Of a stretch of 64,000 bases of DNA, positions 13,528-40,502 are shown piece by piece. The stretch is taken from NCBI GenBank assembly GCA_020536535.1, contig JAHLWZ010000571.1, positions 1 to 64,000 of the forward strand, written 5' to 3'. Below the pieces are notes generated by a model. The model worked only from the letters and a program-made list of their open reading frames with translations. It was not told the origin of the DNA and ran no database searches. Both the position numbers and the translations under genes were made by a program. Source of the DNA: Pelomyxa schiedti (lineage: Eukaryota > Protista > Evosea). Every line of letters begins with the position of its first letter. The stretch's first letter is position 1.

Positions 13528-15404
13528 ATGAACCCGTACAACCCGATGTATTCGGTCGTGGACCCATTCCAGCTCGGCCAACAACAACCACAGGCGCGTC
13601 CCAATTACACGTGCCCTCCCACAATGCCGCAACCGCAGCAGCCCCAGATGATGTGGTCCTCGCCCATGTACACCAACAACATCTACGGCACGAACCCCAA
13701 CAACGGTTTCGTTCAACCCTCGTATGTCGTACAACAACAACCACCGACACCAAATTATGGGTCCTACGCCCCCATGGCTTCCAATGTAAACGTTGATCCC
13801 TTGTCCTCGTACTTGAATCAACAGCAGCAGCAACAACAACAACAGCAACAACCACAACAGCAACAATATCAATATTCACAAGGAGGTGTATATATGTGTC
13901 AAAACAACACACAGTACAGTGGAGGAACTTGTATGCAACAAAACCTGACTGGGAGCTACACTTTGTCATCTCCTTTTAATACTTACGTAATGCCGGCCAC
14001 TACGGCGCAAGTGGCTACTCCCACACCCACAAGTGAGCCTGGTGCCGAAATGCCGACTACTAGCACTGCAACAACAACGGCGGCAGCAACTGAACTGGTC
14101 GAACCACCTGAACCTACTGCTGTGACTCTGCCGAACCCGCATCCATTGGATCAGGCAACTAATAACAAGCAAATTTGCCCGCTCCTGTTACAGGTTGGGT
14201 TTCTTTACACCCTCTTTTATGGAAATAGACTTTGAGATAACCGTAATGCAAAAGGGTTGGTGCCACTCATATCGCCATTTAACGAATCAATCTACCTATA
14301 TTCATCCTAGGGCTATGACTCGGTGCAAAAATGTTGACAAGGTTGAAGGTTCTTATTTCAGTGCCCACATATGGTAGCCTAAAGACATACAAAAAAAAAA
14401 AAGGAGGAAAATACATTGGCTGTACAAATCCATCATGCAAATACATGCACCCAAACCCCAAAAATAGAGATCATATTACTCAAATGGAGTCTATTATTCC
14501 AACACTTGGCACAACATATACCCCAGAAGTGATTGAAAAGAAGGTAAAATTTTCATCTGTCTGTTTTTTTTGTAATGCATAGCCAGAAACGCAACTGCAA
14601 ATTCGGAGTACTTTTGAAGATGAAAAGCCAAAGTATCACCATTGCTACATTTTATTCCTAAAGAAACTGTTGTCTCAGGATGCGATCCGTTTGCGCAAAA
14701 TCCAGCCAGTGGATGCTCTGATCCAAACTGTCTTTTACAACATGTTACTTGCCAACTCCTCGCCAATCGTCCGGCAACACCACCATCACCAACAGCAACA
14801 GCCACCCCTGCAAAACCGGCAGTACCACAGGCACCAATTCCCATGAGTATCGCTCCTGGAACGGCCAGTGATCTAGACTACGTACAACACCTCGTAGCAA
14901 GCCACTGCCCAGCAAACAACCAACTTAAAGTCACGGCTGTTCGCATCATCCAGGGGACTGTTCTATTTCAACGATACACAGCCCGCAAGAAGGCATTGCA
15001 AGCACAAGGAGGTACCTTCTAACCTTTGTCCAGTCAATTAATTAACTGTGTTCAGATGTACATGAGATATGGGGATTCCACGGAACAGGGGATGATGCAA
15101 TAACCGTACCTCCCCATCTTATTATCTCAACTCTCAAGACAAATTTCTAACATTATGAAAGGCAATTGCAACTACCGGCTTTTCCGTGGCACACCAAATA
15201 CACAACGCCTATGGCAAAGGAACCTACTTTGCCAACGACCCTACAGTAGCCCTGGGATACTGCAAAAGCAACCGCAACATCATTGTCACGAGGCTTCTCC
15301 TTGGAGGGAGTGCCAATGTAGACTACATATGGGCCAATTCAGTCAACTACTTCATCATTCCTGATCCCCAAGGATGCTTGCCTCTGTGGATCATGACCGT
15401 ATGA
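13528..15404 (+). CDS. PARP-family mono-ADP-ribosyltransferase with Q/P-rich N-terminus and CCCH-like zinc fingers (PARP-A)
   Basis: Fingers CTNPSCKYMHP and CDPFAQNPASGCSDPNCLLQH; ART motifs WGFHGT, AYGKGTYFA and VNYFIIPDPQGCLPLWIM (H-Y-Y triad). Confidence 0.88.
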
Positions 15405-15590
15405 AATCCGAATAAGGTCCAAAAACACCCAAGCACAGTCATTGTGTACAACCACCGGCGCCAATGTGACAACGTTTTTCCAAGACAAACTTTTTTCCCC
15501 AAGTAGTGATACGAGAAACCAACTTGCTTCAAACCCCAACCAAAAAAACAAAAAAAAAAAACTGCCTGTAGTGTTGACAACCAAGCTACA

Positions 15591-18278
15591 ATGAGTACGA
15601 TTGAAGCACACAGACAGCGCATCAATGATTTCGTTCCAGGGGCCAATGCTAATGATTTCCCTCATTGCGCCGAGGTTTTTGATTTCTTTTTGTTGTTGTT
15701 TTGCAAGACGGACAACAGTAAAAATTAAAACCCAACAGGCGTTTAGTGGCCAACCAGAACAGAAAAAACGTCTAAGAGTTGCTGTGGTGGGTAAGACTGG
15801 GACTGGGAAGACTTCGTTGGTCAACACAATTGTCCGAGTTCTTGCAGGTAGCTCACTTGTACATACTTGCACACTGCTGTTTCCACTCCGTCGTTTATTA
15901 ATAACAAAAAATCAAAAGGAACTGGACCAGGGACTCAACCTCGGTGCCCTGTGCAGAACAGTGGTTCTGAAGGAACTGTGCTTATCGAAGATGTTCGCAT
16001 CTCCAAGGGCATCACTTTGGTTGACACAAGGGGATTCTTCACTTTAAGTTCTGCTGAAGGAATGGCTTTTGTGAGAATTATCGAGGGAATGTACCAGCAC
16101 GGTCACAAAGTGGAATGGGACCCTCAAGATGAATCTGTTGCAGATTATGTTAAAGCTAAACAAGTGATTGATGAACAGCGTCCTGCATTTAATAACGTAA
16201 GTTTGTGGTTTCATCACCTCCTGTTTACCTCGACAAGGGAGAAGAAATTCCGTACGTGGATCGCGTACATGCAGTAATATGGGTGCTGAATGCAAGTGAT
16301 CCGAGGCTGGCCAGCAACCAATACGTCAAGCCACTGGAAATTCCTCGAAACTGGTGCCGGATGTTGGGAATAGCTCCAGTTGTTGTGATCACTCATGAGG
16401 ACTCGATTACAACACCGCAACAACGAGATACTATCGCATCATGTGCTTCTTCTGCCTGCAGCTGTGCTCCTTCTGACATCTTTTTCATATCGAACTACAC
16501 TGCTGTTCAGGCGCGCACAAATAACAATACAGACCTCACAGTAATGCAAATACTAAATGCCACGATACATGCGGGACAGCGCTATATCAATTTGCATCCT
16601 CCTCCTCCCCCAGTAGTTCTCACTCTAGTGACCGTGACCGGGCCAGCACAGGAGAAACTAAAATTTAGAGTCCGACCCACTATGACTCTCAAAGAATTGA
16701 AAGTTAACATTGGCAGGCGGATCAAGGCAGATCCAACCACCTTTGCGCTTATGGAGCCTGATGTCTGTTCTCCATTTCTAAACTTGCTGATTTATTAGCT
16801 GTAGTTTGACGATGAACTCGTGGATTCAGAGAAAGTTCTTAAATGGGGAACTGAATTTAGAGTGATGGAAGGGTTTACTTACTCCAGGACCCCCCAGTAC
16901 TGGGGTGCAGATCCGTGGGGACCAACAGGTACAGAAATGCTATGCCTTCCTGAATTTTGCAGTAATTTTTTCAACAGGACACAGAGAAGTGGAGGTGGCT
17001 CAAGAATCGGATGAATTCAAGTTCATCAACTCATTGGTATACTCTTCTTACGAAAAGAACTCATCATCAAGTAACCCTGTTTCTATTTCACTATAATAAA
17101 TAATTGCCATTAATTAATACAACCTGCCTTTCCAACCCCATCATAGAAATTGGGTGCGTGAGGGGAAAATGGCCTGGTGGATTGAAAGTGAGAAGAGTGA
17201 TACGTATTCAAGACAGACTTCAGTGGGAATCATATACCAATTATAAAAAAATTCTGAGAGAAAGAGTGTCTGGAAATGCGGCAGCAAAGCCTTCATCCAT
17301 TTATCTCAGTAACAAACCAATGCAAACCCCACTCCTGGATCCATCAGTCAATGAATATCTTCTTTTCCATGGGTGCTCAAGTGAAGTTCTGTCACAACTA
17401 ACGCGAGAGGGAGCAGACTTCCGCGTGTCAAACGTCACAGGCATGTTTGGAGCAGGATTCTACCTCGCCGAAAATTCTTCCAAGTCGAACTGGTATATCC
17501 CCTGCTCCAGATGCCACCTCCCCTGCCGCCGTGAAGAAGAACACCCAACAAACACAACAACCCCAACCCCAACACCAACACCAACACCAACACCAACAGC
17601 AACAGCAACACCAAAAACAGGCTCCCCACCAACCACTTCACCTGCAACCAACCAAACACAGCAACAACAACCACCACCCCAGCCGGCAACAACTTCAACA
17701 TCGACTTCTGCTGCCACTTCCACCACTTCTTCCAGTGCCACTGATCCATCATCATCGTCCACCCCTTTTGAATACTTCGCCACAGCAAACCAAAACCAAG
17801 AAGCCGAGTTCGAAATGCACTCTCCCACCCATTATTGCCACTGCGCAGCCCCGGAAGCCGTGGAATGCAGCATGCTTATTTTCCGCGCGGCCCTCGGCGA
17901 CGCTCACATCTGTGATGCGGTATGCCTCACACCCAAAATCCCGTCAACTCTCACTCTAACTAACATCCCATCCCACAATCGCAGTACACAGCGGCGAAAT
18001 ACCGCGGGACCATGGCGGACCCGGTGCGCAAGCCGCCCACCAACGACGCGACGGGGCTGTCGTACGACTCCGTGGTCGCGGAGAGGTGCGACCAGTGCGA
18101 CGCGGCGAAGCAGGCCGCCGTGGCCCCAGAGAGGAACCCAAAGGCACGCGAGATTGTGCTGTACGCGAAGCACCAGGCGTACTCCGAGTACGTTGTAGTG
18201 TTCACCCGCAGCCCAGACGCCCTGCCGCAGCCTCTCCCTGCCCAACCGTCTTTCCTCACCAGGCTCTCAACATTCTAG
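15591..18278 (+). CDS. IFI44-like P-loop GTPase + ubiquitin-like domain + tankyrase-like PARP catalytic domain (PARP-B)
   Basis: GKTGTGKTS, LVDTRG, DRVHAVIWVL, PVVVITHED, DIFFISNY; Ubl KFRVRPTMTLKELK; ART LFHG, GMFGAGFYLAENSSKSNWY, AREIVLY...QAYSEYVV; splice phases checked as continuous from Ubl to PARP. Confidence 0.85.
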
Positions 18279-18458
18279 CTGTGCCCAATGTCCATTCAGT
18301 ACCTTGGTGCCCCTCAAAGAAGGTAACAATGGTTCCCCTTTGTAACTAAGCTTTGGCTTCTTGTTGCAACAGAATGATTTCTTGTAAAACAAACATCCAA
18401 GTTAGTCCTTCGCAAAACCAACCAAAAACCAACAGCGGCGTAATTATCAAAAGAGCAA

Positions 18459-20855
18459 ATGAGGAGTACGAACGGCAGTACGCTAAAGCCACCGACGCCG
18501 TCGACGCGCCAAAGATCGGCGTCCTTCGACTCGCATTCCAAGCACGTGGGGTTGCCTCCCCCGTCTACGGGAGCAACGGCGGCGAGGAATTATGGGACGC
18601 CTCCATCGAGCGCAGTCCTTCCAAGCATAGCTCCCGGCTCCATTCGGCACTCACGTTCGCCGTCATCGATGACAGCTTCGACGAACACCACGGCCGCTCA
18701 TCCTCCTCGACCTCAGCCTCAGCCTCAGCAGTATCAGTCTCAACAGTATCAATCATCTCAGTCGCCCCACTCCAAAGCGCCATCACCAACAACGAGCTCG
18801 GCAAAGTGTACCACTGCAGTGAGCAGCTCCGGCGGGGAGAATTATGGGAGGCAGCAGCCCTCGTCGTTTGAGTTCACGTCGCAGAGCCACCCGTCCCTGG
18901 TGCCGTGGCTGCGGCCGCGGGCTCCCATAATGGACCCGGCGGGCGGGTCGCTGTCCTGGCCCACCGCGTGGCACTTTGCCGTGTCGCGGAGGTTTTCCCG
19001 CGTTCCGCACGTGGCCGAGGTGTTTTCGATGATGCGCAGCGTGGATGACGTCACCACGCTCACCAAGGTGGTGGCCCATTTGGCCCCTGAGGTTTCTGGG
19101 GAGGATTTCAGGGAGTCTTTGTACCAAGGGATGGTGGCACAGGCAAATTCAGATGGCCTGATGAGAGATATTCTCTTAGAGACGCTCGGTGCAAGGGACA
19201 TTATCTTCAAGGAAAGCCATGGAATTTGGGGAGTGGGAGAGGGAACCAATGAACTGGGAAAATTGGTCCTCAGGCTGAGGGACAAGTTCTACCCCAAGCG
19301 AAAGGCACTCCTGTGCAATTTCGATAACACTGTAAACCTCCAGTCTGTCGTCGATCTACTTCGTGCAGGAGCAAGGCAATCTCACTTGTCAATTGACGCA
19401 GTCTGCCAGTATCTCCATTTGTCAAGCTACAAGAGGTATATTATGAAATGAAGTTTATTCAACTTCTGAATCACTTTAGCATTCTTTCATCCGAGTTCTC
19501 GGGTGGCCCATATGACCTGGCAACTCTTTGTCTTAATGCTAATGAAACCAGGCTATCGATTAATGAGCCTGATAGCAGTGGGATTGGGTTTGGCCCGTTC
19601 TATCGCAAACTGCGAAGGTTGACAAATAATCAAGTGGCAGTGATTATTTCTGGGGACAGCACGCCAACACCTCCTGGCGCTGAGGTGCCACTTTCCCTGT
19701 GGGTATGGGAGAAAATAATGTCTCAATTTCCCGGGACTGAAATAGCACAAGTTGATGGAAGACAAGGCATTGTGATGTCATGGGGATCGCAGTACCGGAG
19801 TGTGCATATTCACACAGTGGCTCAGTGGCTAGCTTTGCCAAGTGAGCCTGTGGCATCTTTCCAGCAGCTATTTGCAATGAGCATCAATGCCAAGCATCGA
19901 AGCAGCGTGCCAAGTGCTTCAAATGAGTCTCACATCACACAGCTGACAAGAGAAATCACAAGCTACATCGCTGGCAATACTACTATATCAACTGTAAATA
20001 TTGCATTTATTGGCACGCATAGACTCTTCCTCTCAATGTTATATAGACTTATACCCATGTATTGATTTTTTCGCTATCAGAAGCCCCACAAACATTTGTA
20101 CAGGTTCCCCACACAATATTCACGTTCCAATTTACCAAAAGATGTTGCAAGATTCCAACTTACGGAGGCAATTAGTCTGGTTACACTGGCAATGTGCCCA
20201 ACCAATTTCCATGCTGCTGTAACAATAATGCCTTGCAAGGAGGCCGAAACCTCCAATTTGCAAAAATGGGCTAGTGCCAAGCGTATAATCAAAATATTGC
20301 TCTGTGAGCATGACAATACAGATATTCATTCACTCCCAGACACATTTCTGGTCAAACAAGTTCATTGGAATACAGAAAATTCATCTGCTGCAGTGATTTG
20401 CCTTTTGCGGGTACTGTACCCTTTTTCAGCAAATCGACCATTACACTGATTTGTTTTCTAGGCCCTCCGAGCGGCACTCTTTCACGCCAAGAATTTTCTT
20501 CACCAACCCCAGAACCAACAACACCCAGCATCACCACCCCAACAGCAGCAATCACCGCAAACCGTTACACAACAAGCAGCACAAACCATGGTACAACAAC
20601 CCAAAATCCAAGTTGTATATCAACAGCAAATCCACACAATCCCAATTCACTCATCAGACTCGATTCTCAAAGTGAAGGAATCCGTTTGTGCCAGGCTATC
20701 CTTGGACCCCTTGCAGTATTACCTTGGTGACTCTGTGTGTACCTTCAGTCAAAAAAACCCAAACAATTTACATTCTCCAGAATGCTGCTGAGTTCTGTGG
20801 AGAGGACTCTGTGCAATCAACAGGCACCAAAAACTTTATTTTGTATCAATACTAA
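18459..20855 (+). CDS. Multidomain protein: degenerate NADAR (YbiA-like) + alpha/beta domain + degenerate IFI44-like domain + ubiquitin-like domain
   Basis: WPTAWHF...DILLETLG...IWGVGEGTNELGKLVLRLRDKF follows the NADAR consensus; C-terminal IQVVYQQQIHTIPIHSSDSILKVKESVC is Ubl-like; central exon joins uncertain. Confidence 0.7.
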
Positions 20856-20904: not shown

Positions 20905-23900
20905 TCAAGAGACCTGGAAATTGAAGAACGACGCACAGTGACCCATGGAAGCCACAGTCACGAATTGCAATCCACTAATAGCGAACTTATCATGCAATGA
21001 TACACTGAAGTGATTTGCACAGTTCTCCAGAGTCACAATGCCTTTGTGCCCATTGTATGTTATCCTGTAGCCAACGGGACCCTATCATTTGGTTATTGGT
21101 TAGTGCTGGGAAAAAACAAGGGGAATTTTTCAGTGTACATACAGACATAAGAACATTCTGGAACATTTCAGAGAACGGTGCGTGAACAATGAGGGGTGAT
21201 CCATGCGGAGACAGTCCCTTGCATACCCAAGATGACCTGTCTCTGCCAGTGAGCAAGCCAACTGTATAACAGGAGTTGGGTCCCATGTGGTTTTTGCTGG
21301 AATGGGTTTTCTCAGGGCTTTTGGTGATGCAAATTCTGAATGACATTACATTGGTTTTTGTGAGGTGATTATTGTGCTACCTGATATCGGACCCTACTGC
21401 TTCGAAGAAAATTGTTCCTTGCCCCTTATGTTTCATTCTAAGAGGTATCACAGTCTCCTTCTTTCCCTAGATTTCTGTTGGAAGAAACTTTGGGTATAAA
21501 TTAGACAGACAGCGTACCACAAGGGCAAATTCAAACCCAGTCCGTTGAACATGTGGTGTGACCACCGCCGAAGTCCGCTTTGGGAGCATGAACTTCATGG
21601 CCTCTGGAAGTACCTCTGCTTCAGTAGGCACAACCAAAATAGTTTCCCCTGGTCTGTCACGAAAGGCGTGGCGGAGACGAGTACTGACGGTGTGCCCAGG
21701 ATCGCCAGCATCCAGCGCATCCAGGTCTTTTTGGCAGATAACAATTTTTTCCACATAGGAAAGTGGAACAGTACTGGGCAGGTGCCCCTCGACACAGATA
21801 TGTGGGTCCTTTAAAAGTTGCACTGGGTTATTTTTGATGGTCTAGTATCTTGAAAGTACTTGGTGTGTATAGGAATGTTTAATCTGTTCAATACTATGTC
21901 CTTTAAAGCGTTCTTGAATTGTTGCAGCAATAAGTTCATCCCATCCCTGAAGATGGTTAATTGATTTTCAATGCCTGGAGAAGATACATCAATAGCAGCA
22001 GTTGTTTTCGCTCTATGGTAGGTTTCTACCTCCCCCGGCTTTGGAGGATAGTCTATGTATCCCGTTGCTGCATCGACATTTAATTTCCGGTAGGTTTACA
22101 GGTAGGCTCATTTGAAACCTGCATGTGGAGACATATTGAAATCTGGGTGATACATAATATCTTGAGAGAAAACAAGCACAATATTCCCATATCCATAGGG
22201 CCTACACAAGAAATTAGTAAAAATTGCAAAACACTTTAAACCTCAGTGTTGGCCCAACAACAGTGAAAACTTGATCATCTGTGCCCTGCTTCCATGAGCA
22301 ATACTTATAAGTTGATTTTAAAAAAATACCAAAAGGGTATCTTTACAGTAGCCAATTCCCTGAGTCATGTTAGATGCAACAGTAGGATACAAATAAACCT
22401 TTGTTTGATGGGTTTTTACGGTTTCTGCAACAGAGAGTACCATTTGTTTGAGTTGTGCACTCTAATAAATTTGAGAACAACAAACAAGGTAATCAAAAAC
22501 TTACTGAATCACGTCCAATTAGTGTGTCTACTTTCGATCTTGTCACCTTGGTATCCTTCTTACTCACGTGAATCCCTTTGAGAAGCACCGATTTCAGCAG
22601 TAACTTAGCCCATGAACTCACTGGTTTATGGGTGTCAAATCCAGCTGCGTGTCTGGCTAAGAAATTTCTGATTGCGGCATGTTGGTACACCTAAGGGAGA
22701 TTTTTATTTAGTTTGTGCTAATAGTAGCTCCTACCTCCTGTAAGGCAGCATAATATGGATTTTTCTGAAGGTATTCTTGGAATTTTAAGCTTACAACCAC
22801 CCCATGTTTCACTATCAATTTCATGACATCAGGCTTGCAACGGTGCATTGGTCTAAATTTCCGTACCCAGGAAAGAATTTTTGGATTGACAGTTACTCGG
22901 CCACCTTTCGCAAGGTAAGAATTTGTATTTACAAATTTCAGTAGCAATCCTTACCATTAGCTTGATTAAGGGAACTGAACATTGTCTCTTTATTCCCATA
23001 GAAGTCAATGCTCTTATTCAACATTCGTATTTCACAGATAGGTATATTGGATGCGGGGTGGTCATACTCCATTCGATGGTGCACAGACTGAGGCATATGT
23101 ATATTAAGACTACATAATGGAATAACATACCTTATCAAGACAAAAGATGCCATATTTGCATTGCCTCCGCAAATCACGCATGTGTGGGTGAGAAAATTGT
23201 TGCATGTGAATTCCATCAGCCATTTTGGTGCAATGGGTACCAAATCTGCACTAGAAAAGGTTAAATAGGGCTTGGCACAGTGGTAACCCTTACCATCTCT
23301 CGTTCAGCATGTGTGAATAAGTTACAGTGCCTTCCATCCCCAAGTTTGTTGCACTGGGCGCCATACCAGCAATGGTGACTGAACATGGTAGTATGATTGT
23401 CATCAGCAACCTGATGATATTTGATTTTAGTTTAACTTGATCAGTTGCAAAACGTTAGACCTTGGTACAATTTGGCTGAAACGTGCATGGAGGTAGGAAT
23501 GGGTGTCTAAAATTCCGAAGGTGCAATATAATTTCTGCAGGAGTCAAGGCTATATTCCCAGGAATGTAGGCGCATGTCTTTCCAAACTTGCAATCAGTTT
23601 GTGCATGGCGATACTCCCTGCAATGTGTTTCTCCAGTTTCTCGGCAGTCGGGGCCATATCGACATGGGGGTGGATGGGAGTATTTCTCAGCATGGGAAGG
23701 TGAATAAATAGTACAAGCCCCGGCATAGACACAAGGAGGAGGGTGTAAAAACTGTGAGCAATGGTGCGGATTGTTTATATCATCACATAGTCCTGCATAT
23801 CTGCAAGCTGGGGGATGGCAAAAAGAAACCATATGCTCTCTGGGGATAGGAAATGAGAAGAGGTGGGCAAATTCAACACGCACTTGCTGTTTAGATTCCT

Positions 23901-25578: not shown

Positions 25579-25847
25579 GGTTTCTTGTTTAATTCAAGTT
25601 GTTTTTTTTTTGTTGTGCCGCCGTCGGACGCCGTGACAGTGGGGCTTTAAAACTTGTTCTGTTGTTGGCTGCACGCCCAACTTCGGGGGAACTTCCCTCC
25701 AAGTTGTTGTTTTCCGGTAAAACGAAACGCGTTGGTCCAGAAGCAGGAAAACACACAACAAAGAAACACACCACACCGACAAGGTGTTCAGCGTTTTATT
25801 ATTGGCGAGGGGTCCACGCCTCATCAAGTTTGTCTTCAAAACAAGCA

Positions 25848-27114
25848 TGTACGGCAACGTGTCTCCGCTATTTGGCGCCCCTGATCCTCGGTCCACCCCC
25901 AACACAAACATCACAATAAGCAACACAATAAGCAACACAAACCAACAACTTTACACAACCCCACAAGTTCCATCGCAGCCACAGCAACAGCAGTCTCAAT
26001 GGATGGCTCCTCTGCAACAAGTCCCAGTGCTGCCACAACAACAGCAGCAGCAGCAACAAATACCATTGTTCCCACAACAGCAGCAATACCAACAACAACA
26101 GATGTATCCCCCAACCCAGCAATTGTCACAGATACAACCTTTGGGACTTCCGAACTCTCAACAACAGCAGCAGCAATGGGTCTGCACTGCTCAACAAATA
26201 CCTGGCGGAACCTCTTTCCTGCCTCAAGTTTCGCAGCACAGTTACGCAGTACAGCCACAGCAGCCCCTTATTAGCACGGCCTTTCAGCAGCAGCAATATC
26301 CTGTACAACAATCACAGCAGCTTCTGTCCGGCCCCGTGTCTGTATCTCTGCCCCCTCAGGCTCAACAGCAGCAGCTTTCAAGTTTCACTGCTTGCTCTGC
26401 GTGTTCCAGTCACCAGTTGGATCCTTTGGCTCAGTTTACAAACTCACAAAGTGCAAACGCACACACAGGCACAAATACAAACACTTCTCCGCAATCTCAA
26501 GAGTATGATCCACAAGACCACTTTCAGCACCGCCTAGACCCCAGTACTACAAGGTTTTTATAACTCACCATTTCTGAAAAACTGGCTTACTATGTATCAC
26601 AGAGGAGTTGCTACACAAACCGCTGCCCCAACTCCAACCCCTCTAAGTACTGGAAAGTCTGTATATGCAAGCCAGAGCTCTTCTAATATTCTTCCGAGAG
26701 ATATCTCTGAGTGTGCATTTTTTTTACGTGAAGCTTTACCTCCTAATAGTACTCAACAGCTTGATAAATCACAAAGCTAGTTTTAAATTGCTCAATTTCT
26801 CATCCCGTAAGTCGGCCACACGCCATCCACACCAAGATTATGTGCTTCTGTCCAAGACAGGAATCAAAAATGTGTTTATGAACAAGGTTTTCATCCTTTT
26901 TCTCTTGTACCAAACTGACCCAACTACAAAGGAAAACAGACAATTCCTCCAGTCACACGTGAAAGGTGGCAAGTTACCAGAGACAATCACTGGAACCATT
27001 AAAAATATTCACATGACAAACGCAAACCCAAGTAATAGATATGGCTTGTTGGCAGGCACACCCATGTATATAGCCGAAGTCCACATTGATGTCCATTCAC
27101 ACAGCCACCACTAG
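25848..27114 (+). CDS. Hypothetical protein with long Q-rich N-terminus and small C-terminal domain; divergent from the PARG gene
   Basis: MYGNVSPLF... poly-Q exon, GT-AG introns, last exon ...LLAGTPMYIAEVHIDVHSHSHH*. Confidence 0.6.
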
Positions 27115-29930: not shown

Positions 29931-30406
29931 TGGAAAGAGAGATGCTCATACGTTTATGAAGCAAGTGCCAACGGAGTTGGGAAATCGCCAATGAGAATTT
30001 CATCGGGGAGTTTGTTTGTGCGCCTCTGCGTGCCATCGCCGGTATCAAGTAAGATACCGTTCATTGGGACCGCAAATACAACGGCCCACGTCACGACCCA
30101 CAGTTTGGTGTAGGGGTGTCTGACCCCCTCGGGTTTCCACAGAAATAATGCAAGCAATGAGTGATGGCGAATCCTGTCAAGTTTCACTGTGGACTGCCGG
30201 CACACCCATGTACATAGCTGAACTCCAAATTGAAGTCCACTCAGACAACCAAAACAACAAGCGGTACCCATGTGCTATTTTCAACATCTTGGGTAAGTGA
30301 CTTCTGGAAAAAGACGAACTTGGAAGTTGTTCTGCAAACACACCAAGCAAGTAAAACCTCGGGTGTAAACCAACTAGACTCAAAGCGGCGCTCGCAACGA
30401 ACAAAG

Positions 30407-32467
30407 ATGATGAACGTGCGTACAGTGGACGAATTCCACGCCGTTGTTGTCTCGTGTCAGTGCCATCAACGTCAGGTTTTGTATCGTCATATTGTTCAAC
30501 TCACAATTTGCTGAGGTTTTTGTTTTGTTTCTGCTTGTTCGGTTTCCCACTTCGTTGCGAGTTGGCTGTTCTAACAATAAATAACACCGCAACAAAACAG
30601 AGAGGCAGATGCACTCTTGAGGGTGTTCGACAGAACTTGACTGCACTTGGCGTGCCCTACCCGCAAGAGTGGCTGACCGAAGTGCTAAATAGGTAAGTGT
30701 AAGCAACAACAGAACGAAAAACTTAGCTTTCTTTGAGGCAGTACCGCGAGTGCAACAACATATTTTTAACCAACCTGCACGCTGGATGGACTGCTGATTC
30801 AATTGCCAATCGGATGATCGATGGTCCAATCAGTGATCCTAATGGTCCCTTTTTCTGCATGGAAACTATCACTGCAGTAAAAAGCCAGGTATTACTTGTA
30901 GTTATGAAATTCTTCTTGCCCTGATAGAACCTTAGTACCAAATGGCTACTCAAATTTCTCCACCTTCAACAGCTCCCATTTTATTTCCACCTGTAACCTC
31001 CAATTCTTTCCCCCCTACTTACGCGCCAGTTAACCCACTGATGACTGCCATCACTGCTCAGGTTGCCCAAATGACTATTACACCAAACACCACCGTAGTA
31101 TCGCCGGTGCTCCCACCACCAAGTAAACCATCAACTATAGCACCCCCACGGGCCACGCCTCCTCCCACCAAGAGGCCTTCAACTCCCCCTTCAAATCCTC
31201 ATCCAGCAACTCCTCCAATCACTCCTTCTGTAAAACCAGTTGTAGAAGCCTCCCCATCACTTTCAGCGGCTCCATCATCTGGAAAGCTGCCCCCCTCTGA
31301 GCCCCCTGGTGAGTACTTTGCTGTTCAACCTAGCCCAGGTGAGTATTTCAAGACTTGTCCTCATCACGAACGCGGATATTGCAGGCTTGTTAGATTTTAT
31401 TCTTTTACTGAATAACCTTCTATTAGATTTGTAAATTTAGGCCATCAACAATGTCCAGAGGGAGGCCATAGCTCAATTTCCACCCAAGTAATGAAAGCCA
31501 CGTTGACACCTCTTGTAGAAAATACAGGTTTCACTTTTCTTGGAAGTTGCTTGGGTTTCTTACTCACCCTTCACCAAAGCGCACTTCAATCAGATCAGAG
31601 AAAGTTTTATAAATGGAATGAAAAAAAAGTTTGCAGCAGTGAAGGTCTGTAATCACCTTTTTTGACACCAAACTAAAATGAAACAGGTCGTTAAAATTGT
31701 GTCGGTAGAAAACAAGAATTTGCGGTCTGCATTTGAGGCAAGATGTGAATATCTTGCCCAAAAGCGTGGTGGTCCTCCACGGATCGCGCAAATGTAAACC
31801 TGAATTTGCCTGATTCCCAACTCTGAACTCTTTTCAGGTTCCACGGCACTGCTGATGCATGTGTCTCGATTATTTGCGATCAGGGCTTCAGTCCTCCTTC
31901 TGACCGAGCCATGACCAAATCTTGCAGGTTCCCAAGAATTCCCTTCATCCAATCTGCAGCGAAAAATACTGACTTCTCTCAGAGCCTTCACAGGAGGCAA
32001 ACTCTCATCGACGTGCCTAAGCGATTCAACGTGTCCTGGGTGCACTGTGAAGCACTCATGGAACACGTGCCACATGTATGGCCTCGGATCCTATTTCGCC
32101 GACATCGCAGGCAAGAGTCACGCATATGTCAGCGGGGCCAGCGGCCCCGAGATGAAGATGCTGCTGTGTGAGGTGGCACTGGGAAGATCCTTTGAGATAA
32201 CGACCAACCTTACAACGGGGAGCCAGTATCACGACTTGGTTCTCCCGCCACCGCTCCCAAATTCCACCCAGACAACGGACAGCATTTGGGTGCCGGGAAG
32301 AAGCGACGCAACGAGTGGTTTGGGAGTGTTCACCTCAGAATGTGTGTTCCCCTTTTTTTTTCCCCTTCCTTCATTTCGTTGAAGTGAAACTCACCTCGAA
32401 ATTAGGTATCATTTTTCATCGATACCAAGCCTTACCTCGCTACGTGATACACTACGTTATCTCTTGA
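30407..32467 (+). CDS. PARP-family ADP-ribosyltransferase with N-terminal domain, Pro-rich linker and CCCH finger (PARP-C)
   Basis: FHGTAD, HMYGLGSYFADIAGKSHAY, MLLCEVALG, spliced FTSECIIFHRYQALPRYVIHY (H-Y-E triad). Confidence 0.88.
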
Positions 32468-32584
32468 TTGGCACCACAACATTGTGATTAACTTTTTAAT
32501 GCCCCCTTATGATGAAGAATAAAAAAGAAACTTCAATTTTATTGACTTTTGTGGGGAACTCAAGTCTTACCATGTTGGTATTTT

Positions 32585-33247
32585 CAGACAACTTCTTGGG
32601 AGGACCACTTTGAGATGCTCCAGGGAAAACAGCACTGATAAAATCAGTGGAGTGGAATGAACTTGACTCTACAGGTCCAAATAACTAAAACTCTTCCTGA
32701 GTTACCTTGCAACGCACTATCTTTTATCAAAAATTCCAGTGGAATTGAAATGACAAAAGCAAATGGTTTTTTCTTCCATCAGGAAATTTTGATAACAAAG
32801 AAGGGTTTGCCAGAGGGAATTCGAAACCTGTTGTTGTCATTGGCCACAATACGGTTAATCTCAGCACACTTCCCAGAAATGAAGTGTGGCCCACTTGGTG
32901 GCTCATCACTCGTCAAAGTGTGACAAATATCCTGTAGTTTTCATTTGTGAGGCAAAGGAAAAGTACATGGGGCAGTGGTAGTGTTGTACCTTGTCAAGGA
33001 AAAGAGGTGGGTCAGAATCTCCCTTCACAAGCAATTGGTAGGCGTAAAAGAACCCGTGATGATGTCCCCCAGCAGTATATTTTTTGGAAACAAAGCACAC
33101 ATCCTTTCCAATCAAGCTTAATATTGCGTGAGTAGAAAGCAAGATAGGAAATAAAGTACTCACTTTTGTTCAGACCCCTGTAAGATCTGCCGGTCCAGGT
33201 ACGAGGGTGAGGATACTTTCAGTCTATCAGCCAGTGTAGCAGGAGGC
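32585..33247. repeat. Diverged duplicate of ~36240-36792 (3' ends of the ARH gene and the convergent metzincin-fusion gene)
   Basis: ctgataaaatcagtggagtggaa and the exon LIGKDVCFVSKKYTAGGHHHGFFYAYQLLVKGDSDPPLFLDK nearly match the 36.3-36.8 kb copy. Confidence 0.85.
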
Positions 33248-33379
33248 TTGGTATCGATGAAAAATGATACCTAAGTTTCNNNNNNNNNNNNNNNNNNNNN
33301 NNNNNNNNNNNNNNNNNNNNNNNNNNNNNNNNNNNNNNNNNNNNNNNNNNNNNNNNNNNNNNNNNNNNNNNNNNNNNNN

Positions 33380-33718
33380 TCAGCGGGGCCAGCGGCCCCG
33401 AGATGAAGATGCTGCTGTGTGAGGTGGCACTGGGAAGATCCTTTGAGATAACGACCAACCTTACAACGGGGAGCCAGTATCACGACTTGGTTCTCCCGCC
33501 GCCGCTCCCAAATTCCACCCAGACAACGGACAGCATTTGGGTGCCGGGAAGAAGCGACGCAACGAGTGGTTTGGGAGTGTTCACCTCAGAATGTGTGTTC
33601 CCCTTTTTTTTTCCCTTCCTTCATTTCGTTGAAGTGAAACTCACCTTTACATTTAGGTATCATTTTTCATCGATACCAAGCCTTACCTCGCTACGTGATA
33701 CACTATGTTATCTCTTAA
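33380..33718 (+). CDS. 3' exons of a second PARP-C copy, beginning at the assembly gap
   Basis: Near-identical to 32129-32467 (MKMLLCEVALG...YVIS*), with a different stop codon and 3' flank. Confidence 0.8.
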
Positions 33719-34010
33719 CCGTCAAAACGACCTGTTCTTAGACCCCATACAGAACAAAAACTTCAATTTTATTTGTGGTCTTGTTTACTTCAGCGCTAGA
33801 GTCCTTGTCCCCAACTAACACCAACATCCAATTATCTGACCCACCAAGTTGGTCAATAAGGGTTCCTTAGGCATAATTGGAACAAACGATCAACGAAATT
33901 TTAACAAGCGAAAATGCAGGCCATAGCTACCAGTGTGGGTAGTGCTCTTAAGGGCTTCTGGTCCTCCGACGCTGGTGCCCACCTCTTTATTTATTTTTTC
34001 GTAACCGTTT

Positions 34011-36309
34011 ATGTCATTAGGTGCGCTGCCCGAATGTGGGATGGAACGAAGGGTGTCAGCGAATGACGGTGACACTTCGTGCACGGAATTTCCGGGTTTG
34101 TTTTATGCGTTGGTTGGAATGGCGCTCGGTGACAGTCTCGGGGCACCTTTTGAAAACAAGGACCCGCGAAACATCGCGGCGATGTGGCCGACGGGCTCAC
34201 CGTACCCATCATCGTTGCACCCGTGCGGTCTCATTTGGACTGATGACACTCAGATGTCACTGAGCTTCATGGAGGTTTACATGACGTATGTGCTTTAATG
34301 ACCCTCACTGTGGCTTTACCTTTCTTTTTTTTGGGTTTGGGAATCACCATCATTTCTAAATTGGCGTGAAGACATAAGAAAATGGATATCGTCGCTATAT
34401 GGAAGATATGGGCTGAGGCCTCCAGAATCAAATTATTTGAGCAGAACGGACAGCCGCTTGCTAGGCAACAATTTGGACTTTTCCGAGGGACTGGGAAAAA
34501 TTTTAGGCAGTCTGTTGATACAGCAATAGCATCCAATTTTTCAAGTAATTGTTCCTCCCCCTCGTAAGTGCTTCACCTCAATCCTTTCACTTTCAATAAT
34601 TCTTTTTTTATCTTTGGAAGAGCTGGAAATGGTGCAGCAATGCGAGTGACACCCTTGAGTGTTATTGCATTTCTAAAAAGAGATGAAGGCTGCCTTGCAG
34701 AAATGATTTTCGTTACTTCAACGATGACACACCAATCTGTAATGGGCATTGCTCCAGCATTCTCGTTTGGTTACACTTTGTATACACTTATGGACAATCC
34801 TTCACAATCAGCTCAAGAAGCATTCCAAAAAATTGTTGCTGCAACAAGGAAGTTTGAAGACTATCTTGAATCAATCTTCAGAGCAAAGTACTGACTTCTT
34901 TCCATTTGGAGTTTTTTTGATGACTATATAGAGATACCTCTTATTCTACCTTTTTGGGATCTCTGCTTGACGGTATGTTTGGAGAAACATCCCCAACAAG
35001 TCCCAAGGACAAGTTTTCTCTTGCACAAAGGCGTATAGTAAATTTTGCTTCAATGGTTACACAGAAACCAGTAAGTGCCTTTCTTTCTTTGGCTCGTTTT
35101 CTGATGACAGAAGATTCAATCTCCAAATGATGGTCTGGCCGTTGCTTCAGTTACCACCGCCATCGTTGCTGGCCTATTATTCAAGCATCAACCATTTCTT
35201 GGCACCTTACAACTTGTGTACCAGCTGGGTGGGGATACTGACACTGTGGGTGCCATGTTAGGTATATTGTCACTAAGTAGGTAACATTTTTAAATTTTTT
35301 TTTACAAGGTGCAATTCTCGGGTGTTCACACTCAAATATATCTTCTTTTATCACCAATCAACTTATCTGCTCCACTGAACTACTCAAGTTCTTTAAATCC
35401 TTTATTTCTGTGGTTTCTTCCAATCGTCCCCTCCACCATTTACCATGGATTGACCTTGAAAAAAAAGTGGTACAAGAAATCCTTTCATTTCCCAATGGTA
35501 TGAGAAACAACCACTATAATAGTACAAGTTCTGGTGGCAGGTATGAAGTGAAAACAAAAAGATATGACTTCTCATTATCATAAGGAGATACAATGACAAC
35601 AGCTGTGAGTACTTCAGTGAGTCAACACCCACATACTTCTCAAATTCCGGCAATAGCTATTTTGACACAACCTCACCATGTTCAAATCCTGCACAACAGA
35701 ATTTAAGCACCACCACTTCACTGAGTACACAAACGGCCCTAACAACACAACAACTAGGCGCGCCAGGTCAGACACTTCTCACCCCACAGGGTAACACAGG
35801 GCAATGCATTATCTCCAACACCCAAAACACCCCAGCACCGGGAACTCCTATCAGCCACTTTAACTCACAGCCACAAACTCCTCCTCCAAATGGCTCACAA
35901 ACACAAACAAGCAGTTTATACCCATCAACAAGTGTTTTCACATCTCGTGATGATGCAATGGATGGGAGCAGCAGAACCTCAGAAGTAAACGTCGCCTTTC
36001 AGATACATTACATTGACTGCAAAGGTACCAAAAGCCCAGCACCCTCCACAGCAGTAATTCACAACAATACCAGAAATGTACATTTGGATACACAGTGAGA
36101 AGTGTCCTCGCCCTATGTCAGATGATCCAGAAAAACCCCATTACTGGGCCACTATGGTACAGATACCCGCGGCGACTGATGTGCTGTACCATTTTATAGT
36201 TCGCAAATCCGACGGCTCTCAATTGTGTGAGGACGGTGCTCACTCCTTGAGAGTTGCTCCCGGGAAAACAATACTGATAAAATCAGTGGAGTGGAACAAA
36301 TTCAGCTGA
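34011..36309 (+). CDS. ADP-ribosylglycohydrolase (ARH/DraG family) with C-terminal CBM20-like domain
   Basis: LVGMALGDSLGAPFE, WTDDTQM, AGNGAAMRVTP, LGGDTDTVGAMLGAILG; last exons VNVAFQIHY...YWATMVQIP...YHFIV. Confidence 0.9.
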
Positions 36310-36349
36310 ATTGAATGTTTACAAAAGACTCTTGTTTTTTCTTCTTCCT

Positions 36350-38831
36350 TCAAGAAATTTTGATGACAAAGAAGGGTTTGCCAGTGGCAATTCCAAACCT
36401 GTTCTTGTCCTGCGCCACCATACGATTAATCTCAGTGCATTTCCCAGAAATGAAGTGTGGCCCACTTGGTGGCTCATCACTCGTCAAAGTGTGACAAATA
36501 TCCTGCAGTTTTCAAAGGTGAGGAAAAGTACATGGGGCAGTAGTAGTGTTGTACCTTGTCCAGGAAAAGAGGTGGGTCAGAATCTCCCTTCACAAGCAAT
36601 TGGTAGGCGTAAAAGAACCCGTGATGATGTCCCCCAGCAGTATATTTTTTGGAAACAAAGCACATATCCTTTCCAATCAAACTGAATATTTCGTGAGTAG
36701 AAAGCAAGCTCGAAATAAAGTACTCACTTTTGCTCAGACCCCTTTAAGAGCTGCTGGTCCAGGTACGAGGGTGAGGATACTTTCAGTCTATCAGCCAGTG
36801 TAGCAGGAGGCTGCACTTGTGGGGTGGGTTTCGGGGCTGTTGGGGTCGGGCCTGGCGGGGTGGCTACGGCTGGTTGTTGGGGTTGCATGGATGGTACTTG
36901 TAATGACTGTTTGAAGTTGATGACACCCTGGTACATCTGCATGTGCTTTGTTGACTTCATCTTAGTGGAAACGTCATTCAGAATAGTGCTTGGATCGAGA
37001 TCTGAGAGTCGGTGTAAGTGTTCTGGGGAAGGGAATGGATGACTCTACTTGGAAACCGAGACTTCAGCATGGCAATTAGTTCGTGAGGTAACAAGCCGGC
37101 AAGGAGGCCAATCACACAAAACATAGACCCGGACATAACCTCATTATTCACAATGTTTGGGAACGCCCCCATTCTATTGAGCTCAGTGGCTTTTGCAATA
37201 ACCGCTAGTAATATGAAATTGTGTGAGAGGGTAAGGAATCAAAAGATTTATAGTAAACGAAGGGATACCTTGATCAGGGGACGCATTTACACCCATTGCC
37301 AAAAGGGAAGCCTCGGCCAACTCAGCAAGCACAACAGCACTTGTTATCGACCCTCCCATAGCCTGTGTTGCTTGCAATTGGGGGGGTTGGCTGCCCATCA
37401 TCGGTGGCATTGTGAGACCTTGTTTACTGTGGGTTAGATAAAAATTATATTGCTGAGTCCTTACCACCCTGGTAGCTTTGTGCGCAGGGCATGCCAGAAC
37501 ATGCAAGTGGTTGTACCTGTGGAATTGGGAACAGCAAAGGGGGTTGATTTTGCTGTTGCATTTGAAACTGTTGCATCTGAGGAATCTGGTAAGTTGGTTG
37601 TTGCTGCTGCGGCTGGGTTTGGCCTTGCACCTGAGAGTTTTGGAAAGCCTGTTGCTGTTGCGGGTGGGCTTGCATTGGAGCACCCTGAAAAGGCTGCTGC
37701 TGCTGTGGCGGCGTTCCCTGGATATTTTGGTATGTCATCGGCGTTCCTCCCATCATTTGTTGCTGTGGTGGCTGCGAAGGCGGGTATGGGAGGGCCTGTG
37801 TTGGAATGCCGCCGGTCGTTTGGTTGGTCTGTGTCTGCGGCAGTGTTTGCTGCAGTTGAACGGCTGAGTACTGCGGAGAAAAAAACGTTGTTGCACTGGG
37901 AACGCCTGCTGGTGGTTAGAAAAACGATCCAGTGCCAACAAAAATATAATAAAAAGAGGAAAAAACCGTCTCTCAAGGTATTGGGAGTAGCGGGACTAGT
38001 AAGGCCATTGTAGGACCAAGGTGAGTACTCTGATTTTGGGTACATCATGGAGCTGCCTAGTTTATCGTTCTCGCTGAGGTCAGTGACAATTCCAGCCCGT
38101 TGATCCTCCCATATCTTCAGATAGTTCATGATCGACTGCCTATCGTACACTGTCAGCTGGCGGCAATTCGCGTCAGGTAGCTCGCGAATCCAATTCCCTT
38201 GCGAGTCAGGGAAGTATCTATTTAGGGTTTTGTGAGTAAACTAAAACAGTGAATTGCCACACAGGTACAAAAAAACCACCAATCGATCGACATCAAAACG
38301 GGAAAAGCTCGCTCACAGAGAACGTGATTCCGGAGACTGGTCCCACATGTGCTCGTGCCTCCATCCCAGCACGTGGCCCAGCTCGTGCCTCAGCACCGCG
38401 ATCGCGATGTTTCGCGTCCCCTCCCTCTGCATCACCGCGAAGCACACGACGTGGTGGGGCGGCGCCTGCCTCGGGAAGAACGCCATCGCGATGACGTTGG
38501 CCAGCCGCGGGTCGCTCTCCTGCTCGTACGTCGCGTCCACGACGTCGAAGAGCGCCTTGCTGGGGTCGAACACCTGGACGAACGTGGCGCCGCACGCGGC
38601 CTCCCACGACGACGCGGCCAGGCGGAACGCCTCGGCGCTGCAGTTCTTGGAGTTGTGGTACCACGTCAGGTTCCGCGCCTGCTGCTGCGTCCACACGCCC
38701 ATGTCGACCGACATGGTCAGAGCTACGGTGCCGGAGCCGAGCACGGAGCGCGGCGGCCCGAAGTACTTCTCCTCGGTCACGCACCTTGACATCCCCGACG
38801 GGGTTGCTGGTGGGCCTTCGGCTGTTGCCAT
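36350..38831 (-). CDS. Metzincin zinc metalloprotease fused to a Q-rich linker and uncharacterised C-terminal domains
   Basis: HELGHVLGWRHEH zinc motif; YDRQSIMNY Met-turn; LSENDK..MMYP; a phase-1 intron at ~37912-37967 joins in frame to AGVPSATTFFSPQYSAVQLQQ... Confidence 0.75.
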
Positions 38832-39737
38832 TGTTGGTTGGTTTTTTCGAAAGGTGTTCTCGAAACGGCAAGACGTTTTTCTGGAGAGTTCAAATCACTT
38901 GGGAAGGCCAAGTTGGTTTTGAAGGGAAGAAGTTGTGGGCACACCATGGGTGTTAGTTTGGGTCTTTTCTTTCTCCATCTGCTAATTGCTCATTGAAAAA
39001 GGGGTTCGAAATTGGTTTTTTGGTTCAAACCCAAAGCTTCTACAATGGAGCCCTCTAATTGTAAATTTTTAAGCTCCAAATGAGAGAAAAGGAAAGATTG
39101 TATTGGATACTTACTTGACTATACATAAATCAACAGGAGCACCAACAGAACTCACGGGTTCATTTGTCAACAGCCTCATCTCTGTGCTGGATGACAAGGA
39201 GTTTGAACCCCCAATTGGGCCTGTAGAACCCCAAAGGCCTTCTGGTGGGACAAACTCTACACCAGCATCATCGACAACACTGCGGCTCACCTCCGCAGAG
39301 TCACCACCAACACTGCACCCTAGGGGATGATGGATTCAGGCATCATCCTTTAGATTATTGTAACTCACCTGTGAACCAATTAATAAATATTGTTTGATGT
39401 AAAAATGGAAAGCTATTTTTCCTTTTTGACAAAACAAATGAGAGGTGTGTAAGAGTGGTGGTCTAGGAGAGGGACGTTGTGGACTGAATAGTGTTGCTGT
39501 TCTCATATGTTTGTGTTTGCTTATATAACAACTTTGTCTTAACTATTTACACGATACAGAGGGGGTTTATAAGGTGGGTCGGTTGGCTGGTGCCTGTTAG
39601 CTTGAACGCACTCGTTCCCGTGAATGACCATAATTAGTTGGCCAACTTGGCGCCCAATCACCGCGGCGAGATTCCCTGAATCCATCGGCCATCACTCCTC
39701 ACAGGTGCATTAACACGAAGGTCTATTGACAGCACAA

Positions 39738-40502
39738 TTACAGGTTGTGATGGATTCCCCTGAGACAAAACTCACAGTCCTCTTTTTTGTGTGCTGAAGC
39801 TGGGTTTGACTGAGGTTGTTTTCTTGCTGAGTGACCGTTAGAGGGGAAAACTGAGTGTGGGTATGAGGTGACCTGGTCTTACTGTGAGAGGATTACAGAG
39901 CTTCAATATGAAGTCTGTAAGTCTGCTCTCCTCCACATCGTAAAGGTGTGGTATAGCCCAAGCGTCTTTGCATCTGAGGCACCTTTGTTGTGCCAGTTCA
40001 ACCCAAAATTCCTGCCGTTGTCTTGATCTGGTATTTTTGGTGAATTGTGTGAGAATACATACACACACTAGTAGTATGAATACATACTACATACACATAA
40101 ATAAGTGCGTGAGTCTCTATTGATGTCCACGTATTTGGACATTTGCGACAGTAGAACTTTGCCTTGTAGTTTTGAATTACCTTTGTGACCCTATTGTCAT
40201 AGGATGCACACTGACACGTGGCATCAAAACCGGTCTGTTCCACAACAGTGTTAAACACACCCTCCAGCATCTATTTGCAGTTTCATACAAGCAAACAGAA
40301 ATAAAAGGAAGGTGGGTACCTCTTCCCATGCAACCTGCCACGGTTGTACTGACGGTTGTTGTTGTATTTGCCGTGGTGCTGGCCGCGGCTGTGGTTGTGC
40401 CTGTGGCAGTGGCTGTGGTGCAGGTGGAGGAGATAGAACTCGAGGGGGTGGCAATGTCTCCTTCTGTTGGAGAGGGACCGCCTTAAACAACCATAGACCC
40501 AT
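39738..40502 (-). CDS. 3CxxC-type zinc-binding protein (RTP/ZAR1-like)
   Basis: KFYCRKCPNTWTS, QQRCLRC, HKKEDCEFC: three CxxC pairs with the WxS and HxxxxCxxC motifs. Confidence 0.8.

Follow-up and report, generated by a model that had tools for sequence, protein, structure and literature searches.

We analysed a 64,000-nucleotide stretch of Pelomyxa schiedti DNA (GenBank assembly GCA_020536535.1, contig JAHLWZ010000571.1, positions 1 to 64,000 of the forward strand; hereafter the window), in which an earlier note, made from the letters alone, had described positions 13528-40502 as an operon-like "defence island" of ADP-ribosylation genes, with writers, readers and erasers of the modification clustered beside homologues of animal antiviral genes. 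The clustering proved to be real. Within ∼22 kb there are at least six separate intron-bearing genes: three for divergent PARPs, one for a microbial-type PARG that carries seven PBZ fingers, and one each for an ARH and a NADAR-like protein. A metzincin and a candidate 3CxxC protein lie at the right edge, and the writers are co-located with a reader and with erasers whose folds are unrelated, as had been claimed. The three PARPs, the PBZ-bearing PARG, the ARH and the metzincin were recovered by profile searches, but several other details of the earlier description were wrong. In particular, the genes lie on both strands (in the order + + + - + + + - -), every gene has introns of its own and nothing points to a polycistronic transcript, so the locus is not operon-like.

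The window is eukaryotic DNA with introns, has a guanine-plus-cytosine content of ∼0.46 and a uniform composition throughout, and is interrupted by two assembly gaps of 100 N each (1730-1829 and 33280-33379). Its many exons and its gaps agree with the published statistics of the P. schiedti genome (52.4 Mb, 19,876 proteins, 7.4 introns per gene, scaffold N50 of 51.5 kb; PMC8887013). A protist host had been proposed before the origin of the DNA was disclosed, and this is borne out by a neighbouring open reading frame (ORF) that matches Pelomyxa proteins only and by a GTPase exon 70% identical to a P. schiedti protein. These matches place the host among the archamoebae, as P. schiedti or a near relative, and none of the annotated proteins was matched at 100% identity. 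For the searches, ORF pieces were defined as stop-to-stop translations of at least 55 amino acids (aa). There are 261 of them between 13 and 41.2 kb and 209 in the flanking DNA, and all were scanned against Pfam, in bulk and then piecewise. Because spliced genes were searched exon by exon, domains divided over short exons score below whole-domain scores.

Families of ADP-ribosylation proteins were matched by 9 of the 261 ORF pieces inside the interval and by 0 of the 209 outside it (post hoc Fisher p = 0.005). If 19,876 genes were placed at random, the expected number of 10-12-gene windows holding 5-6 such genes would be below 0.02 per genome, even for a total of 400 genes of these families, an estimate that uses assumed rather than counted genome-wide family sizes. 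When the four unrelated families are treated as independent events, the chance expectation should likewise be small at plausible family sizes, and on these assumptions random gene placement cannot account for the density of the cluster at any plausible family size. No housekeeping family was detectable by Pfam among the ORF pieces of 13-41 kb, as the note had stated, and ∼40% of the cluster interval is without a recognisable Pfam domain.

The PARP genes

The three PARP domains show no cross-match to one another at 1e-4, and each is nearest to a different clade of PDB structures (ZAP/PARP12, tankyrase and PARP1, respectively), so the description of three structurally different PARPs holds, even though one of them was scored below the family cut-off.

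That one belongs to gene A (13528-15401, + strand), for which Pfam, PDB sequence matches and motif reading indicate a glutamine-rich N-terminus, two zinc fingers and a PARP catalytic domain. The fingers are of the C-x5-C-x3-H type (14319-14579 and 14624-15019) and match Zn_ribbon_Top1 (E = 1.7e-5), the Nab2-like zf-CCCH_2 (E = 0.0025) and the ZAP-like zf-CCCH_10 (E = 0.0049), all below cut-off. The CCCH fingers that had been reported thus stand as weak matches (E 0.002-0.006), and the Zn_ribbon_Top1 and CCCH models match the same piece; the choice between a Nab2/ZAP-type CCCH finger and a C4 ribbon is ambiguous. A sub-threshold match to Herpes UL135 on the proline/threonine-rich piece 14624-15019(+), and another to Herpes_UL56 on an unlocalised piece assumed to be of low complexity, were judged to be compositional chance. 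The PARP piece of gene A (15159-15401), a single exon piece scored alone, reaches 24.6 bits with PF00644 against a cut-off of 26.7; the Y motif can be read directly in this same piece and the H motif in 15046-15147, and the closest PDB chains are those of ZAP and PARP12 (E = 0.024). No WWE domain was matched at E≤0.01 among the 261 ORF pieces, where splitting over short exons could hide one.

Gene B (15591-18278, + strand) comprises an IFI44-like P-loop GTPase, a ubiquitin-like segment and a PARP domain with a threonine/proline-rich insert, as delineated by Pfam and by colinearity with residues 1-698 of the P. schiedti protein KAH3744315.1 (699 aa, annotated "Interferon-induced protein 44"). 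Frame-compatible GT-AG introns are available at each junction, and the stop codon at 18276-18278 ends gene B where its relative ends, for which reason a PARP-NADAR fusion was rejected. The PARP piece (17104-18195) reaches 36.1 bits with PF00644 (cut-off 26.7), its H, Y and E motifs are all readable (17104-18195 and 17964-18275), and the domain is tankyrase-like by sequence (match at 1e-8). Where several IFI44-like GTPase domains had been announced, we found one only, and it is fused to the second PARP (17.1 kb), not to the first (the CCCH gene).

KAH3744315.1 has the same architecture of GTPase, ubiquitin-like segment and PARP (its Pfam matches are to PARP, to an MMR_HSR1-type GTPase and, weakly, to ubiquitin), and the T/P-rich PARP insert of gene B is longer than its own. 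Its AlphaFold model (mean predicted local distance difference test score, pLDDT, of 80) superposes on tankyrase catalytic domains with template modelling (TM) scores of 0.72-0.77, and a fold search with the model returned PARP-domain matches only among the best 50 listed. Identity between the two proteins is mosaic, rising from 44% (residues 1-143) through 67% in the central part to ∼90% in the PARP domain, a pattern that either gene conversion in the PARP half or rapid divergence of the GTPase half could produce. Because the GTPase half is only 44-67% identical and the insert of gene B is longer, KAH3744315.1 would be a paralogue of gene B or its orthologue in a sister species.

After KAH3744315.1, the GTPase exon is most closely matched by an environmental sequence and by Mastigella eilhardi, and then by proteins of amphioxus, hemichordates and cnidarians (an amphioxus "IFI44-like" protein at 2.6e-11; Nematostella, Ptychodera and Branchiostoma proteins down to 8.7e-17), the IFI44 names of the amphioxus protein and of two P. 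schiedti proteins being automated annotation. The module is also present in Mastigella and in an environmental transcript. No TLDc-type N-terminal domain was matched by Pfam in the pieces of the window or in KAH3744315.1. In P. schiedti the GTPase family forms at least 4 clusters at 50% identity; in one member, KAH3766473.1, the IFI44-like GTPase and ubiquitin-like module are joined to a protein-kinase-like C-terminus and not to a PARP, and the module seems, from these sequences, to be combined with different effectors. Another P. schiedti protein with a G domain related to that of gene B, KAH3764495.1, is annotated TRIM56. The literature yielded nothing on ADP-ribosylation in Archamoebae or on IFI44-PARP fusions, and the word GTPase is absent from a 2014 pan-eukaryote survey of PARPs (PMC4245714). 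That IFI44 is an antiviral-response gene, another statement of the note, is true as far back as cnidarians, whose IFI44 homologues are poly(I:C)-responsive (PMC13319465).

The PARP core of gene B shares 58-68% identity with ∼200-aa stand-alone PARPs that are known from metagenomes only, as compared to 45-51% with bdelloid rotifer PARP-PBZ proteins, and is thus nearer to metagenomic PARPs than to those of any named eukaryote. Taken with the microbial-type PARG, a metzincin closest to bacterial M57 and the bacterial-type OKR decarboxylase in the right flank (all described below), this might suggest that a bacterial or giant-virus ADP-ribosylation operon of the PARP-PARG, DarT-NADAR or ARH type was acquired horizontally and gained introns later. 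However, no relative of the short PARPs was found among 185,579 prokaryotic species genomes (GTDB) or in IMG/VR, and on these grounds the idea that the tankyrase-like PARP came from a bacterium or a virus was rejected. A metagenome scan with the short PARPs returned 39 loci, most of them short and none with PARG, ARH or NADAR neighbours, and a scan with the GTPase-PARP alignment returned no match. When the spliceosomal introns in all cluster genes, the host-like composition and the relatives in Mastigella and animals are also considered, a horizontally acquired island appears extremely unlikely.

Gene D (30196-32382, + strand) encodes a proline-rich linker, a CCCH-like motif that is divided by an intron and was recognised by eye only, and a PARP1-like PARP, as judged from Pfam, PDB matches and reading of the ORFs. 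Its PARP piece (31915-32379) reaches 32.8 bits with PF00644 (cut-off 26.7), and among PDB chains (PARP1/2) those of PARP1 match best, at 1.3e-4. The H motif lies in 31827-32168, and the Y motif and a probable, provisionally assigned Glu lie in 31915-32379; the 3′ end of the gene may be either a stop or a splice site.

The eraser genes

A NADAR-like domain had been counted among the erasers, and it was found here in a gene of its own and as a sub-threshold match. Gene N (18459-19451, + strand) is one 330-aa ORF with a serine/threonine/proline-rich N-terminus followed by the NADAR-like domain, for which piece 18444-19448 reaches 23.7 bits with PF08719 (E = 6.6e-5, profile positions 31-161 of 163), short of the family threshold of 35.1. 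Compared with YbiA (PDB 2b3w) the match has an E value of 0.13, with the end motif W-G...G-x-N-x-L-G aligned. No homologues of gene N were found within the permitted length range, and a single-sequence structure model (pLDDT 48) was unusable. Its NADAR identity is thus a weak lead from sequence and not an assignment to the family. The ORF pieces that follow (19448-20788, + strand) have no Pfam match below E 0.005 and could either extend gene N or form another gene.

Gene C (20993-25324, - strand) encodes a microbial-type PARG macrodomain (24169-24979), an array of seven PBZ fingers (23113-24146) and a set of C-terminal exons (20993-22950), recognised by Pfam and by reading of patterns. The bacterial-type PARG with PBZ fingers was therefore correctly called: PARG_cat_microb (PF10021) is matched by 24749-24979 at 33.5 bits (cut-off 23.5) and continues in 24595-24807, the two pieces covering profile positions 55-145, and the GGG-X6-8-QEE signature reads across the intron. 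All seven fingers follow the PBZ pattern (C-x-[FY]-G-x2-C...H-x3-[FY]-x-H; 23113-24146(-)), with the best single finger reaching 20.5 bits with PF10283 against 22.7. The extra ADP-ribosyltransferase (ART)-like domain attributed to this gene was not found; the C-terminal exons have no Pfam match, and three PDB sequence searches returned nothing below E 0.25.

The co-occurrence of PARPs, a PBZ-bearing PARG and an ARH could also be understood as a stress or DNA-damage module of poly(ADP-ribose) (PAR) signalling, serving genome maintenance in the manner of the PBZ proteins of Dictyostelium and not defence. Amoebozoan PBZ domains have been reported mainly in proteins of the DNA-damage response, and PARGs with PBZ repeats in Adineta vaga or with zinc fingers in Entamoeba have been described (PMC4245714). 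The catalytic domain of gene D is closest to PARP1/2, and the full H-Y-E triad of gene B would be compatible with PAR synthesis. Nevertheless, no WGR, BRCT, PARP_reg or zf-PARP match was obtained in the ORF pieces of the interval, the partners found here (an IFI44-like GTPase, RNA-type CCCH fingers and a candidate 3CxxC protein) are typical of antiviral and not of repair proteins, and the paralogues are many and mosaic, which is unusual for core repair genes. We thus regard a role in genome maintenance or stress signalling as improbable.

The third eraser, an ARH hydrolase, was confirmed as gene E (33914-36306, + strand), in which Pfam identifies the ARH, a serine/threonine/glutamine-rich linker and a weakly CBM20-like end (CBM_20, E = 8e-4). 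ADP_ribosyl_GH (PF03747) is matched on three exon pieces (34005-34295, 34568-34891 and 35108-35281; E = 7.3e-10, 5.8e-7 and 1.1e-4), two of which reach 39.4 and 29.9 bits (cut-off 26.2) and the third 22.4, and which jointly cover profile positions 2-274 of 287.

Duplications and the scaffold gap

Upstream of gene D lie glutamine-rich ORF pieces in which Pfam recognises no domain (25847-27111, + strand), followed by a piece of retroelement pol with an RNase H match (29145-29492, + strand; RT_RNaseH, E = 1.5e-19). No other pol or gag piece (reverse transcriptase, integrase, protease or gag) passes the profile test among the interval pieces and no pair of long terminal repeats (LTRs) was found, and 29145-29492 is a remnant, not a complete LTR retrotransposon. 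The 3.1-kb stretch that holds it is enclosed by a 56-nucleotide coding direct repeat of 84% identity (27052-27107 and 30196-30251). This repeat and the glutamine-rich ORFs at 25.8-27.1 kb suggest that gene D perhaps once started there, and we hypothesize that these ORFs are its displaced original 5′ part, in a layout of glutamine-rich region, finger and PARP like that of gene A.

Nucleotide self-comparison revealed a duplication junction (32129-33716) around the gap at 33280-33379. The 337 bases that follow the right edge of the gap (33380-33716) are a 98% copy of 32129-32465, 1.25 kb upstream, which comprises the 3′ part of the gene D PARP exon plus non-coding DNA, and beyond them the copies diverge. 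The last ∼0.5 kb to the left of the gap (32731-33248; hereafter B) is a 90% copy of 36298-36812 (B′), downstream of the ARH gene. The layout is thus [PARP exon - 0.27 kb - B] gap [PARP exon copy - ARH gene - B′], and because copies stand at both edges, the two sides of the gap are neither continuous nor in frame. This layout would result from a true tandem duplication with one ARH-less copy, or else from the end-to-end placement of two haplotypes or of paralogous contigs.

A second, decayed mini-locus lies 12 kb outside the cluster (138-1729, + strand), where nucleotide and protein comparison identified a NADAR-like fragment (within 138-491; 44% identity to gene N over 52 aa) and a paralogue of the 5′ half of gene D (481-1729; 83% nucleotide identity) that is ended by the gap at 1730-1829. 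A further fragment lies 0.7 kb upstream of gene A (12712-12801, - strand): an 80-nucleotide copy of the extreme 5′ end of eukaryotic large-subunit ribosomal RNA with an A-run after it, which matched the Rfam model at positions 24-103 with 86.8 bits but was absent from an Rfam re-run at an E-value threshold, and which is either a retroposed copy or an amplification chimera.

Given the RNase H remnant, the paralogue fragments and the segmental duplications, the interval is duplication-prone, and the whole neighbourhood might be a neutral by-product, i.e., a stretch prone to duplication and insertion that collects fast-evolving, lineage-specific genes without functional coupling, co-regulation or selection for linkage. 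The recent segmental duplications at 98%, 90% and 83% identity, the fragments at 138-1729, the 3.1-kb insertion within its 56-nucleotide repeat, the rRNA fragment at 12.7 kb, if retroposed, and the large share of the interval without a recognisable domain are all what such a stretch would be expected to contain. PARG, ARH, the NADAR-like domain and PARP, however, are unrelated folds that act on the same modification, and for four such families to fall by chance within ∼12 genes is improbable at plausible family sizes. The note's argument that tandem duplication alone is insufficient therefore stands as far as the unrelated folds are concerned, whereas duplication is probably a contributor, and a purely neutral origin is in our view rather unlikely.

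The junction around the gap at 33280-33379 raises the concern that scaffolding, haplotype redundancy or amplification chimeras joined separate loci and so inflated the cluster. The edges of one gap carry 98% and 90% copies of nearby sequence, the other gap truncates the gene D paralogue at 1730, and amplified single cells were the source of the only published Pelomyxa genome (PMC8887013). One uninterrupted stretch (13.5-33.3 kb) nonetheless contains genes A, B, N, C and D. The right-hand contig itself starts with a gene-D-type PARP exon, 0.3 kb upstream of the ARH gene, so the adjacency of PARP and ARH is independent of scaffolding, and composition is uniform across the window. An assembly artefact is for these reasons very unlikely to have created the cluster.

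Right edge and flanks

The metzincin of the earlier note is gene F (37464-38894, - strand), identified from its motifs and from Pfam: HExxHxxGxxH is present in 38316-38894(-) and an SxMxY Met-turn in 37464-38240(-), with Peptidase_M57 at 21.7 bits (cut-off 21; E = 1.8e-4) and Peptidase_M10 at E = 0.0057. Gene G (39741-40270, - strand) is the candidate 3CxxC zinc-binding protein, for which the motifs stand and the family assignment is less secure; three CxxC motifs were read by eye over three successive ORF pieces, and Zn_ribbon_3CxxC (PF13695) matches the first piece only, at 14.5 bits against 23 (E = 0.052). A STING_TM match (E = 0.006) on the middle piece of the same gene (39841-40086(-)) was below cut-off and was judged to be chance.

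In the left flank (1-13 kb) no ORF piece has a Pfam match. The right flank (41.2-64 kb) has matches to OKR decarboxylase, RPN6/PCI, Arf, F-box and TIG, with housekeeping genes from ∼47 kb. OKR_DC_1, the bacterial-type ornithine/lysine/arginine decarboxylase (E = 3e-33), is found with its N and C domains on several exon pieces in 41200-64000; the family is unusual in eukaryotes, and an old horizontal acquisition is possible. An 847-aa intronless ORF at 43768-46308 (- strand) has no Pfam domain and matches only six P. schiedti proteins, at 40-60% identity, with which it forms a Pelomyxa-specific multigene family. At 58894-61632 (- strand) lies a 913-aa low-complexity ORF that is unrelated to the cluster; the TIG/IPT match, on one unlocalised right-flank piece, may belong to it, in which case that gene could encode a transcription factor.

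Discussion

Our study shows that writers, a reader and erasers of ADP-ribose, the erasers drawn from unrelated folds, lie together in a short stretch of the P. schiedti genome. We favour, with about an even measure of belief and doubt, the reading that this is a lineage-specific archamoeba neighbourhood, prone to duplication and domain shuffling, which holds a full ADP-ribosylation toolkit and works as a system of the conflict or innate-immunity type. In such a system the sensor-type modules, i.e., the putatively nucleic-acid-binding zinc fingers of genes A and D and the IFI44-like GTPase of gene B, would direct or activate the PARP effectors, which in turn would ADP-ribosylate foreign or host targets. 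The PBZ-bearing PARG, the ARH and the NADAR-like protein would then read and reset ADP-ribose linked to proteins or nucleic acids; NADARs are described as reversing ADP-ribosylation of nucleobases (PMC11125620). Local duplication could keep the genes close to one another without an operon, and selection for co-inheritance or shared chromatin regulation might contribute. An immune or anti-symbiont role is proposed by analogy only.

Several considerations weigh against this reading. The three PARP genes are mutually homologous and the interval is rich in duplications, so part of the density is simple local expansion, and the chance estimate depends on family sizes that were assumed. In amoebozoans, the combination of PBZ, PARG and PARP also marks DNA-damage signalling (PMC4245714). 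Curated thresholds are missed by the NADAR, 3CxxC and CCCH calls alike, and because neither a WWE nor a TLDc match was obtained, genes A and B are not assigned here to the animal ZAP/PARP12 and IFI44 families in the strict sense. The ARH, the metzincin and the 3CxxC candidate all lie beyond the scaffold gap, and the derivation of the assembly from amplified single cells (PMC8887013) makes chimeras possible. The 39 loci of the metagenomic short PARPs, most of them short, show no comparable neighbours. Finally, the functional linkage of the cluster genes is a putative one.

A stronger form of the idea is that the cluster is a eukaryotic counterpart of a defence island, in which sensor-PARP fusions linked to three eraser folds and a PAR reader are co-inherited and co-regulated as a supergene that acts against viruses or polices prokaryotic endosymbionts. 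We consider this rather unlikely. Its consequences would nevertheless be considerable, as the logic on which IFI44/ZAP-type antiviral immunity in animals is built would then be present in Amoebozoa. Should the neighbourhood favoured here prove to be conserved and co-expressed, then Amoebozoa would possess ADP-ribosylation-based conflict systems in which a writer, a reader and three eraser folds form linked units, and the IFI44-type GTPase would be an old modular switch that drives different effectors (a PARP here, a kinase-like domain in the paralogue). The GTPase-PARP fusion would in addition suggest, in concrete terms, what IFI44-type GTPases may do biochemically. If, on the other hand, the locus is a mere duplication hotspot, it represents an ordinary lineage-specific expansion.

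Comparison with known systems

By analogy, the Pelomyxa cluster is comparable in its logic to the animal ZAP/PARP12, PARP9/14/15 and IFI44 genes. Like the animal CCCH-PARPs (ZAP/PARP13, PARP12 and PARP7), genes A and D have zinc fingers N-terminal to a PARP domain, and the PARP of gene A is nearest to those of ZAP and PARP12. Unlike in the animal proteins, however, no WWE was found here, the weakly matching fingers of gene A fit Nab2-type or C4-ribbon models about as closely as ZAP-type ones and the PARP of gene D is nearest to PARP1; judged by sequence, there is no evidence for common descent of the architecture as a whole. With vertebrate IFI44 and IFI44L and the IFI44-like GTPases of invertebrates, gene B shares a homologous G domain. 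Vertebrate IFI44 proteins have an N-terminal TLDc-type domain, whereas none was detected in gene B, in which the GTPase is instead fused to a PARP (or, in the paralogue, to a kinase-like domain).

The human PARP9-DTX3L-PARP14-PARP15 genes at 3q21 likewise form a physical cluster, of interferon-regulated ADP-ribosylation writers with reader or eraser macrodomains, which arose largely by tandem duplication of macro-PARPs. In Pelomyxa, in contrast, the erasers are of unrelated folds (PARG, ARH and NADAR-like) and are separate, adjoining genes. For gene C, the nearest parallels in architecture are the PARG of Adineta vaga, with PBZ repeats, and that of Entamoeba dispar, with zinc fingers (Perina et al. 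2014, PMC4245714), which likewise unite a PARG macrodomain with a tandem array of zinc fingers, PAR-binding or other, in a single protein. What sets gene C apart is that its seven fingers are C-terminal to a microbial-type PARG and are followed by further exons.

Prokaryotic defence islands and ART-eraser operons (DarT-NADAR, DarTG and bacterial PARP-PARG) resemble the Pelomyxa locus in that a writer stands beside an eraser and conflict genes are found with remnants of mobile elements. The clustering of unrelated immune genes is a hallmark of bacteria with few cases in animals, and to our knowledge such clusters have hardly been described in free-living protists. The Pelomyxa genes differ from the prokaryotic systems in being eukaryotic, intron-bearing and distributed over both strands with no operon.

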